Of a stretch of DNA of 64,000 nucleotides, positions 48,501 to 51,500 are shown one piece after another. The notes under the pieces were generated by a model. The model was not told where the DNA came from. It made no database searches and saw only the letters and a list, made by a program, of their open reading frames with translations. The position numbers and the translations under genes are program-made. Location of the stretch: NCBI GenBank assembly GCA_002269645.1, contig NIVC01000056.1:682001-746000 (forward strand), in the 5' to 3' direction. The stretch comes from Macrostomum lignano. Taxonomy: Eukaryota. How positions within the stretch are numbered: the stretch's first letter is position 1; each line of letters opens with the position of its first letter.

Positions 48501-51500
48501 TTACCTGCTACATTACTCGATGCCAATAGATTTTTTATCGGGTTAAAAACAGTTTAAATTGGACTTCAGAGTAGGACTGTTAGAATAAATCTAAGCAATA
48601 GTGGAGATGAATCCATTCAAAAAATACGACAGTCAACCAAGGCAGACAGACAGTCATGCCAACAGCCACAATTTCTAAAGTATTCGAAGATATAATTTTA
48701 AAATATTGCACTCAATAGCCCTAGCAAGGTGCAATCGTTGAAAAACAACAAACTGAAAGGAACGTAAGCCCACCCAGTTGTCTGGAGCGGCGCTCTGATG
48801 TGCCAGCGGCCCAGGCTCGATTCCAAGTGCAGTTACATTAATTTGTGGCTACATTGGAATCTATGCTCGTGAAATTAACGCTCAGCTTGAGGCCCGAACC
48901 CCAAGGCACAGTGAAGTGTACATGCCTAACGATAGATAAAGTTAGGGTCGCTGTACACTCCTGTGTGAGTGTGTGCCTGTGCGTTTGACTGCGTACGTAT
49001 CCGCGCGCTTGTGTGCCTGCTCAGGGGAGTCGGCGGAATGGTGGCAGTAATGCCTCTCGCCGGTTGTGTGACAATGTCGCCTACTTAAAATGCCTCTAAT
49101 AAAAACGGACGCACCTAAAGAGATTTTCTCGCCAGCATCGGGCGGCAAGATGAAGGTGAGTAGCGCCATAGACGAGATGAGCACGCATGGGATGATGAGG
49201 TTAAAGCCATAGTATAGGGTCCGCCTGCGGATCTTAATATGATATCGCAGATCTATGAACGGATGCGGGCAGCAGTCGTAGGTAATGGCGAATCTTTGAC
49301 AGGGCATCTCTGCAAAGCACAGTCAGATTTAAATAATTGCACAGATAATTTGCATAGGGTGTTGCCTTACCGAACATTTTTTAGTGCGCGTGACGCGTCG
49401 TCAATAAGGTTATCTAAGGTGGGTTCTTTTAGAGCAGCTGGACCAGGAACCAGACGTCAAAAATCATCAAAAAAGTGACTTCGTACTGCACGAAAATGAA
49501 TGGGATATACCGTGCTAATTGTGCTATATATCGATAGACAAGCTGCAAGCAGATTAAACGTGAAAATTATAATTTCAACAGTTGTGCGTGTTGAAGACAT
49601 GCATTAATGTGTGCATTTGTTTGTTGAAGTACACATGAATTTCAACTGTTCACTTGGTCAAGACCTTGCTAGAGAATCTTACCAGCCATGCTGCACTCTA
49701 TAGCTTTTTGCAGCCCATTTAGGCTTATACACATTGAATTTATTCCAAGACATGGTTACATATAGTAATGGAGCTTTTGTCTATGGTAGCAAGTTTGGCA
49801 CAGGTCCAACATTCCACTGCACCAATACAGGGTGACGCCAAGAATACAATCTGCTCAGTTACAACAAAAACAAAATAGCATTTCAGCATGTTCAAAACTT
49901 CACAAACAAAAGCTCCATTACTTTGGTAGACATATCTTGGATTAAATTCAATGCATGTAAGCCCAGATCTGGCCTGCAGAAAGCAATATTAACCATTTGT
50001 ACATTGCACACTGATCTATGGAATGCGATTCGCCCTCTTACCGAAGCTGACTTTCTCGCCAGCATCAGGCGGTATGATGAAGCTTAGCAGAGCTAGGCAA
50101 GCCAAGAATGAGCATGGCGCTATCAAGTTGAATATGTAATAAAGTTTTCTCCGACGTATTTTCATGAAGAATTCCAGATCTATGAATGGATAGGTGCAGC
50201 AGTCGTACAGATTACTGTGTCGAATGCCGGGAATCTCTGCAAGCCAAATGCGGGGAAGTTTTCGCACTTTGTGGACAGATTCTGCTACACCAAAAGTGCA
50301 TTAGCAATCGGATAAGAAAGTTCGAAAGTTCCTTTCTTATACTCGTAGAATTGCTCTTTTTATTGCCAATCGTTCAGATTAACAGGATCTTCTTTTGCGT
50401 AAGGAACCGCTGCAGCTAGTTAGCTAGCGCTAGGCACCTGGTTAACCCTTATGCCTGGGGTCTCTAGTCCTCTCCTCTCCTCTCCTCTCCTCTCCTCTCC
50501 TCTCCTCTCCTCTCCTCTCCTCTCCTCTCCTCTCCTCTCCTCTCCTCTCCTCTCCTCTCCTCTCCTCTCCTCTCCTCTCCTCTCCTCTCCTCTCCTCTCC
50601 TCTCCTCTCCTCTCCTCTCCTCTCCTCTCCTCTCCTCTCCTCTCCTCTCCTCTCCTCTCCTCTCCTCTCCTCTCCTCTCCTCTCTCTCCTCTCCTCTCTC
50701 CCTCTCCTCTCTCTCTCCTCTCCTCTCCCCTCCTCTCCTCTCCTCTCCTCTCTTCTCTCCTCTCTCTCCTCTCCTCTCCTCTCCTCTCCTCTCCTCTTCT
50801 CTCCTCTCCTCTCCTCTTCTCTAATCTCATCTCCTCCTTCTCATCTCCCTTCCTCTCCTCTTTTCTCAATCTCTCCTCTCCTCTCCTCTCACCTTCTCTC
50901 TTCTAGTGTTTTTCCTCGTCTCCTTTCCCATATATCCCTTATCTCTTCTCAATTATCTTTCCTCTCTCCCCTGTTCCAGTCCGTAGTCATGCTCTAGGTA
51001 TCTGGCCGTTGAAATGAAAACGTCAGCTGACTTCTGCCTTAAGCAGTGTAAATTGTGTTTAAATTAGTAAATCATCTTTTAAACTGCAAACGGAAATAGC
51101 TAAAAATAACAAATAATAACAAAAAATCGCAAATTACCGAGGGAGAAATTATGCAATAATTAGTAGTTCCAGTTTTTTCCACAAAAATTTAGCTCCGTTT
51201 TCTTCAACTAGATTTGATCAGCCGTCTAGCATAACTGGTTTAATCGTGCTAAACAAACTTTCAACAGTTGGGATAACTTCAAGCTTTCCCTTAAATTAAT
51301 AATTAATTCGTGTTATCGACTCCGCGCTCGTTCGATTTGTTTTGCTTTAATGACGCATGATGGATTGATTAACCGAAAGCTCCTGACGCGGCCCAACAGC
51401 CTTGTTAGGCTTTTGCCTTAATCCCCCTCCCCAATACCTAGCCTCTCGTGTTCTGTTTGATTATGCAGACTCGACAACTCTGAAGCGAAAAAGCATGTTG

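Follow-up and report, generated by a model that had tools for sequence, protein, structure and literature searches.

The diversification of Cys-loop receptor genes in invertebrates proceeds mainly through mutually exclusive exons (MXEs), which among insects bear on the targets of insecticides, as in the case of alpha6 and spinosad. The nicotinic acetylcholine receptor (nAChR) alpha6 gene of insects carries two such clusters, exons 3a/3b, which encode loop D, and exons 8a/8b/8c, which encode the second membrane segment (M2) and the M2-M3 loop (Grauso 2002; Jin 2007, PMC1919356; PMC2064938; PMC8505678). Across Cys-loop receptors, tandem MXEs have been described at exons 3 and 8 of alpha6, exon 4 of alpha4, exons 3 and 6 of RDL, and exon 3 of GluCl (PMC2064938, PMC8505678). 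In a tabulation for Drosophila, exons 3 and 8 are the only ones of D-alpha6 with alternatives, while D-alpha7 is entered as "Not Reported" (PMC8505678), and the insect alpha6 isoform system has been documented back roughly 300 million years (PMC1919356). Here we describe exons 6a and 6b of an alpha7-type nAChR gene of the flatworm Macrostomum lignano, a tandem pair that encodes loop C together with the first membrane segment (M1). The gene lies in a stretch of 64,000 nucleotides, hereafter the window (assembly GCA_002269645.1, contig NIVC01000056.1, positions 682,001 to 746,000). Our reading, to which we give a probability of about 0.7, is that 6a and 6b are mutually exclusive exons of ancient origin that act mainly as a switch of M1 and the pore base, with gene-specific differences in loop C.

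The pair resembles the insect alpha6 system in that it belongs to the alpha7/alpha6 subfamily, consists of tandemly duplicated exons of which one copy would be chosen, and recodes a functional module. It differs in its position, because the loop C/M1 exon lies between the exon 3 and exon 8 clusters, where no alternatives are listed for insect alpha6 (PMC8505678, PMC1919356). The other close parallel is RDL exon 6 (6a/6b, formerly c/d), whose MXEs exchange residues close to loops F and C and affect the potency of agonists (PMC2064938, PMC12309072, PMC4019635). RDL, however, belongs to the GABA receptor family and its variable residues are extracellular only, whereas the exon in the window spans M1 as far as M2 position 3', with consistent differences in the membrane part. 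Our search of the literature found no published alternative loop C/M1 exon in an nAChR, although absence from the literature searched is not proof, and no description of nAChR splicing in flatworms or other lophotrochozoans; the term "alternative splicing" is absent from a paper on the expansion of nAChRs in lophotrochozoans (PMC6896357). Tandem MXEs in Cys-loop receptors were thus already known, and the cassette itself is already present in automated RefSeq isoforms of the nemertean Lineus; what is new, relative to the nAChR literature searched, is the loop C/M1 pair.

Exons 6a (50236-50042) and 6b (49309-49115) lie on the minus strand, and the two 195-nt exons of the original prediction proved exact in their coordinates. 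A tblastn search with human alpha7, which served as a probe only, gave two matches to its loop C/M1 part, 50243-50040 (E = 5e-17) and 49307-49098 (E = 3e-21), values at which the resemblance is not due to chance. Each exon is preceded by a pyrimidine-rich tract and gcag, and is followed by gtaaga (6a) or gtgcgt (6b); both begin and end in phase 1 and contain no stop codons. Each encodes beta9, loop C, beta10, pre-M1, M1, the M1-M2 loop, and M2 positions -1' to 3'. Exon 6a, of the variant (a) type, has loop C YDCCTYPF and ends in GEKVSFG, and it is present in the UniRef models P0001 and P0138; exon 6b, of the canonical (b) type, has YDCCPHPF and GEKISLG, with an M1 almost the same as in other spiralian alpha7-like genes. 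Between the two exons, 62% of nucleotides and 59% of amino acids are identical (27 of 66 residues differ), and in the beta9/loop C/beta10 halves amino-acid identity falls to 52%. The vicinal Cys-Cys of loop C and the GEK before M2 are kept in both, as is Phe at the position of alpha7 Tyr195, and on these residues too the alignment bore out what had been predicted. Common to both are YDCC, PF, IDL, RRR, LYY, N-L-I, PC, PPDAGEK, and the final G. Exons 6a and 6b are a tandem-duplicated alternative exon pair of an alpha7-type nAChR gene.

To define what distinguishes the two types, we compared three a-type with four b-type exons of M. lignano. Twelve columns were diagnostic, 11 of them in pre-M1, M1, the M1-M2 loop, or the start of M2; the remaining one, Ser versus Ala, lies in the flank of loop C. 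Across all phyla six columns remained diagnostic, all six in the membrane half and none in loop C: the Thr after RRR, exchanged for Lys, Arg, or Ser; the Gly of LYYG, exchanged for a hydrophobic residue; the residue after the Pro-Cys of M1; a Met in mid-M1, exchanged for Leu; the Leu before the terminal Pro-Pro of M1, exchanged for Ile or Met; and the Leu at M2 position 3', exchanged for Phe, Cys, or His. The GEK motif (-1', 0') and the Ser at 2' are the same in both exon types. Loop C differences do not follow exon type consistently, as PHPF is carried by 6b in the window gene and by 6a in its paralog at locus L002 (NIVC01004192.1). The original prediction had seen a swappable agonist-binding loop as the point of the cassette, and the diagnostic columns speak against that emphasis, since no loop C column separates the types across phyla and only a flanking one does so within M. 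lignano, while the loop C half groups by species (below).

Under our reading, either 6a or 6b would be spliced between exon 5 and an M2 exon. The resulting subunits would be equally long, and they would be distinguished by beta9, loop C, beta10, pre-M1, M1, and the M2 end that faces the cytoplasm. Selection has apparently kept the types apart at the residue that follows RRR, at the Gly of LYYG, at several positions of M1, at the residue preceding the PP with which M1 ends, and at M2 positions 1' and 3'. Pre-M1 and M1 couple binding to gating. In alpha7, the transmembrane site at which positive modulators such as PNU-120596 act is formed in part by M1 residues, among them the Ser that corresponds to a position occupied by Ala in 6a and by Ser in 6b. 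The switch would mainly retune gating, desensitisation, or conductance, or else contacts with lipids, modulators, or other subunits in assembly, and the loop C differences would form a gene-specific layer that may also shift agonist potency in the paralog encoded in the window.

The same arrangement recurs in other phyla. In Lineus longissimus (Nemertea; L010) the a type is found at 76692-76889 and the b type at 77676-77873, and Lingula anatina (Brachiopoda; L011, LFEI02000065.1) has a variant exon at 9685-9885 and a canonical one at 10380-10580. Among environmental sequences, a TARA Oceans scaffold (L008) carries the a type at 1113-1304 and the b type at 1605-1799, a Logan contig (L009) has them in the same order, and an ENA contig (L013, ERZ21781341 ctg60794l) has them at 9998-10195 and 10268-10465, with about 72 nt between the copies. 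The variant exon is upstream and the canonical exon downstream in every locus that bears the pair. We checked whether one copy is silent or degenerate in relatives, the refutation proposed with the original prediction, and found both intact and under selection in L002, Lineus, Lingula, and the environmental contigs; the prediction withstands this check, in keeping with alternative tandem exons.

In Lineus both choices are present among the RefSeq models: X3 and X6 use the a type and X1, X2, and X4 the b type, all of them 480 aa long. Because each model has one copy and the lengths are equal, the models use a and b mutually exclusively. The cassette of this alpha-7-like gene is probably orthologous to that of M. 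lignano, and the end of M1 and GEKVSFG in the a-type isoforms (XP_064652944.1, X3; XP_064652968.1, X6) are identical to 6a. The Lineus gene differs from the window gene in its single M2 exon and in a further alternative exon, exon 4; its isoforms come from automated annotation rather than from a publication. The alternative exon 4 is found in isoform X4 (P0132), with MWNAYNVQWDPAEFGNISVIRLPSKALWKPDLLLYN versus MWNDYHLRWNPKNYGGIDKLRIPPGKLWRPDILMYN, and would be a fourth alternative-exon position in the family.

For Lingula, the single RefSeq protein (XP_013406819.1) lacks the variant exon, which is open, splice-compatible, and likely to be an alternative exon that annotation has passed over. 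The ENA contig has an M2 exon identical to that of Lineus, and the open reading frame (ORF) called on it (P0158) runs through both the a and the b copy. When we searched with a profile of three a-type exons, the only returns were short, exon-sized metagenome ORFs; a-type isoforms are probably hidden under b-type representatives by 90% clustering, as they are for Lineus. The gastropod Gigantopelta aegis (L012, CM027791.1) has a single exon 6, two copies of exon 3, and two M2 exons. Just downstream of its real exon 4, at 15220-16239, we observed a fragment repeated about 15 times in tandem; it encodes R[AVI]WKPDILMYN and corresponds to the 3' end of exon 4, and the array looks like a minisatellite born from the exon end.

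To examine the age of the duplication we built a neighbor-joining (NJ) tree of the exon peptides, in which the spiralian a types fell together and the b types fell together, and in which all spiralian exons were separated from arthropod exons at 100%. We then computed quartets on the two parts of the exon separately: a membrane half of 39 columns (pre-M1, M1, the M1-M2 loop, and the start of M2) and an extracellular half of 28 columns (beta9, loop C, and beta10). For the membrane half, pairing by exon type (a-a, b-b) had bootstrap support of at least 99.9% when Macrostomum was compared with Lineus or the TARA scaffold, and of 87-95% when it was compared with Lingula. For the extracellular half, the partner of each a type was instead the conspecific b type, with bootstrap support of 95-100% in comparisons of Macrostomum with the other phyla. 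These patterns suggest that the a/b pair probably traces to a single ancient duplication, which would predate the split of the flatworm, nemertean, and brachiopod phyla. They further suggest that the membrane half stayed differentiated by exon type while the loop C half followed lineage. Recent gene conversion of the loop C half was considered and ruled out, as nucleotide identity is equal in both halves (0.59-0.64). The likeness of loop C within species could reflect old conversion, or parallel constraint on, or adaptation of, both copies to one partner surface. A broader scenario, for which we consider the chances about even, is that the alpha7/alpha6-type gene of the spiralian (possibly the protostome) ancestor already had several MXE clusters, among them a loop C/M1 cluster more than 500 million years old that serves as an M1/pore-base switch and whose loop C halves have changed together in each lineage.

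Within M. lignano, the paralog at L002 has the pairs 3a/3b, 6a/6b, and 7a/7b in the same order as the window gene, and a third paralog (P0008) has one a-type and one b-type copy. A further, compact paralog (L001) has only a b-type exon 6, a 3b-type exon 3, and a 7a-type M2 exon; just upstream of that M2 exon, at 13982-14205, there are short tandem GVMIMLSH-like repeats that resemble its start. Between the window and L002, identity is 70% for 6a against 6a and 80% for 6b against 6b, as compared with 56-64% for a against b, and the exon duplication therefore predates the gene duplication. The same comparison gave a proportion of nonsynonymous differences (pN) of 0.17 and of synonymous differences (pS) of 0.87 for 6a, the latter too saturated to correct, so that omega was not computable; for 6b the values were 0.14 and 0.63, with omega of about 0.11. 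Exons align between the two loci and introns do not, apart from a dispersed repeat. Low pN (about 0.15), near-saturated pS, and unalignable introns together indicate that both 6a and 6b have long been held by purifying selection. The 6a/6b feature is real, functional-looking, and ancient.

Because inclusion of both exons at the window locus keeps the reading frame (195 nt, 65 codons), nonsense-mediated decay cannot enforce exclusivity, and the intron between 6a and 6b (49310-50041, 732 nt) is too long for steric exclusion; in the ENA contig, the intron of about 72 nt may enforce it sterically. A search for conserved intronic elements or competing RNA pairings found only hairpins resembling miniature inverted-repeat transposable elements (MITEs) and dispersed repeats, with no similarity to the intron of the paralog.

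The in-frame arrangement also raises the alternative that 6a and 6b are included together, giving a subunit with two loop C/M1 modules. Several database models do run through both copies, sometimes with two or three M2 copies as well (P0005, P0007, and P0008 in M. lignano UniRef; P0009, P0010, P0013, P0021, and P0146-P0155 in arthropod RefSeq). A second M1 would, however, invert the topology of M2-M4 in a pentameric ligand-gated channel, and for that reason the joined models are probably annotation artefacts of in-frame alternative exons. The 480-aa Lineus isoforms have one copy each, and so do P0001, P0138, P0002, and P0003 in M. lignano, and we regard joint inclusion as extremely improbable. 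Nearly as hard to sustain is the proposal that one of the M. lignano exons is a relic no longer spliced in, leaving a single form at the exon 6 position. It would account for the database models of the window locus, which contain only 6a; L001 has lost its a-type copy, and a dead tandem exon duplicate does exist in the neighboring nAChR gene. That gene (about 22801-14924, minus strand) encodes loop C and M1 in separate exons and has M1 and M2 in one exon; its M3 exon is duplicated with its flanks (15640-15480 and 15070-14900) at 91% nucleotide identity including the intron flanks, and in the upstream copy the frame is broken by indels and a stop codon, so that this young duplicate is dead. Exons 6a and 6b look quite different, diverged but with open frames, splice sites, and every family-invariant residue intact, and with the low pN against saturated synonymous sites and unalignable introns described above. 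We consider the relic proposal very unlikely.

A more serious alternative accepts the cassette and places its purpose in loop C, so that the isoforms would differ mainly in orthosteric pharmacology (acetylcholine, choline, nicotine, and toxins). The exon does encode loop C, its extracellular halves in the window have diverged strongly, and RDL exon 6 offers a precedent in which residues between loops F and C are exchanged and agonist potency is altered (PMC2064938, PMC12309072, PMC4019635). Yet 6a and 6b share their core aromatic and Cys residues, the PHPF motif changes exon type between the window and L002, no loop C column holds the types apart across phyla, a single flanking column does so within M. 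lignano, and the extracellular half groups with the other exon of its own species. Loop C as the principal target of the switch is therefore doubtful in our view, and we prefer an M1/pore-base switch with gene-specific loop C differences.

A number of observations nevertheless count against this preferred reading. The a clade had NJ support below 40%, and quartets on whole exons gave a-a/b-b a bootstrap support of just about 63-76% when Macrostomum was set against Lineus or the TARA scaffold and were ambiguous against Lingula. Only 39 alignment columns bear on the deep orthology of the a types, and copies that evolve fast can be drawn together in a tree. The diagnostic positions of M1 do not fall on one face of the helix (P = 0.30 and 0.93), and as a consequence no single interface can be named. 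We found no transcript-level evidence for the window locus, where P0001 and P0138, both with 6a, are predicted models, and no database protein from that locus contains 6b. Fragments with an exon 5-6b junction were searched for, and none came from M. lignano; the NCBI model of the paralog (P0003) uses 6b, and both choices are seen in the Lineus isoforms, which are themselves automated RefSeq models. Finally, the single exon 6 of L001, and likewise of Gigantopelta, means that the pair is dispensable in some genes.

The statement in the original prediction that no such cassette is known in insect alpha7-type genes is doubtful. RefSeq models of Nilaparvata lugens (X12), Rhodnius prolixus (X2), and Schistocerca gregaria (X1/X3/X5), as well as of the barnacle Amphibalanus amphitrite (X1-X5), have two tandem loop C/M1 exons. 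The loop C/M1 exon of these arthropod alpha7-type genes is thus duplicated in tandem as in M. lignano, but both copies are included in the predicted proteins. The arthropod second copies make up a clade (97%) separate from the spiralian a types; as all spiralian exons group together at 100%, the arthropod duplication was probably independent. Taken as a whole, the earlier interpretation stands in identifying an alternative cassette, is probably mistaken about which part of the exon matters, and is questionable on the absence from insects.

If a third cluster encoding loop C and M1 is indeed conserved among flatworms, nemerteans, and brachiopods, the isoform system would have arisen much earlier than the roughly 300 million years ago to which it has been traced in insects (PMC1919356). 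Such a cluster would also provide natural pairs of M1 sequences with which to ask about the roles of M1 and the M1-M2 linker in gating, desensitisation, and modulator binding. The pair flags exons that current annotations have missed, as in Lingula, or have wrongly joined in tandem, as in models of M. lignano and arthropods. The mosaic itself, with a membrane half that follows exon type and a loop C half that follows species, is an unusual evolutionary signature.

The identity of the host gene was established by several comparisons. By tblastn, it is a minus-strand alpha7-type nAChR subunit gene with exons from about 57.9 to 42.6 kb of the window. Isoforms with 6a and with 6b both matched the Pfam families Neur_chan_LBD (E = 1e-63) and Neur_chan_memb (E = 1e-51 or 1e-52), and the closest solved structure was human alpha7 (7KOO, 437 bits), ahead of alpha3, alpha4, and alpha1 (about 310 bits). 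The top database match was P0001 of M. lignano (97% identity), and the next seven were also from M. lignano; these were followed by insect alpha6/alpha7 and by nemertean, brachiopod, and mollusc alpha7-like proteins, the named ones being alpha7, acr-16, and insect alpha6. A Cys-loop with two Cys 13 residues apart is present in exon 5, and the YxCC of loop C and the GEK before M2 are present in both isoforms. The product is probably a homomeric channel.

The exons, all on the minus strand, were assigned largely by tblastn and by AG/GT splice sites. Exon 2 (57717-57865), supported by matches to alpha7 and the paralogs, encodes the N-terminal part of the extracellular domain; the signal-peptide exon of the window gene was not located. 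It is followed by the 45-nt exons 3a (55042-55086), an alternative copy of the loop D exon that is in frame between AG and GT sites and has a counterpart at 21732-21773 of L002, and 3b (54206-54250), of the canonical type. Exon 4 (52866-52975, 110 nt) encodes the loop A region, and exon 5 (52022-52338, 317 nt) encodes loop E, the Cys-loop, and loops B and F. Downstream of 6a and 6b are the 87-nt exons 7a (47617-47703), which runs from M2 position 5' onwards through the M2-M3 loop and has a counterpart in L002, and 7b (47087-47173), an alternative M2 exon used in P0001. Exon 8 (45580-45689, 110 nt) encodes M3, and exon 9 (42564-43178, 615 nt) encodes the M3-M4 loop, M4, and the stop codon, its frame being open in the assembled isoforms. 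Exons 2-9 assembled into a 541-codon open frame in all eight combinations of the three alternative pairs, and the gene could accordingly encode eight subunit isoforms. The possibility of two adjacent partial genes was ruled out, as exons 4, 5, 8, and 9 are each single.

The two further pairs, 3a/3b and 7a/7b, all four exons of which have AG/GT sites, match exons 3 and 8 of insect alpha6 in position, and both recur in L002. Exon 3 is likewise present twice in Gigantopelta, in Limulus (P0060), and in Lineus, where the copies at 62458 and 62606 are each used by RefSeq isoforms. Exons 7a and 7b differ at M2 positions 8', 13', 15'-17', and 20' (Asp versus Glu). In an NJ tree without bootstraps, 7a grouped with the insect M2 exon type "...VAD..PQTS..." and with a Nilaparvata alpha7 variant, and 7b with the spiralian canonical exon. 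Because 7a groups with that insect type, the M2 cluster may be orthologous to exon 8 of insect alpha6, which hints that it predates the split of flatworms and insects.

We also noted several repeats in the introns that surround exons 6a and 6b. The intron between exons 5 and 6a contains a CT-rich microsatellite of ctcct/cctct units (about 50451-50906) that gives rise to spurious ORFs of 149-151 aa on both strands. The MITE-like hairpin of the 6a-6b intron is a nested inverted repeat (49717-49968) with arms of 43 nt and 22 nt, and short relatives of it occur elsewhere in the gene (48032-48046, 48146-48160, and 47369-47413/49664-49708). Just 3' of 6b there is a 344-nt dispersed repeat (49105-48773), of which a copy with 82% identity is found in a different intron of L002.

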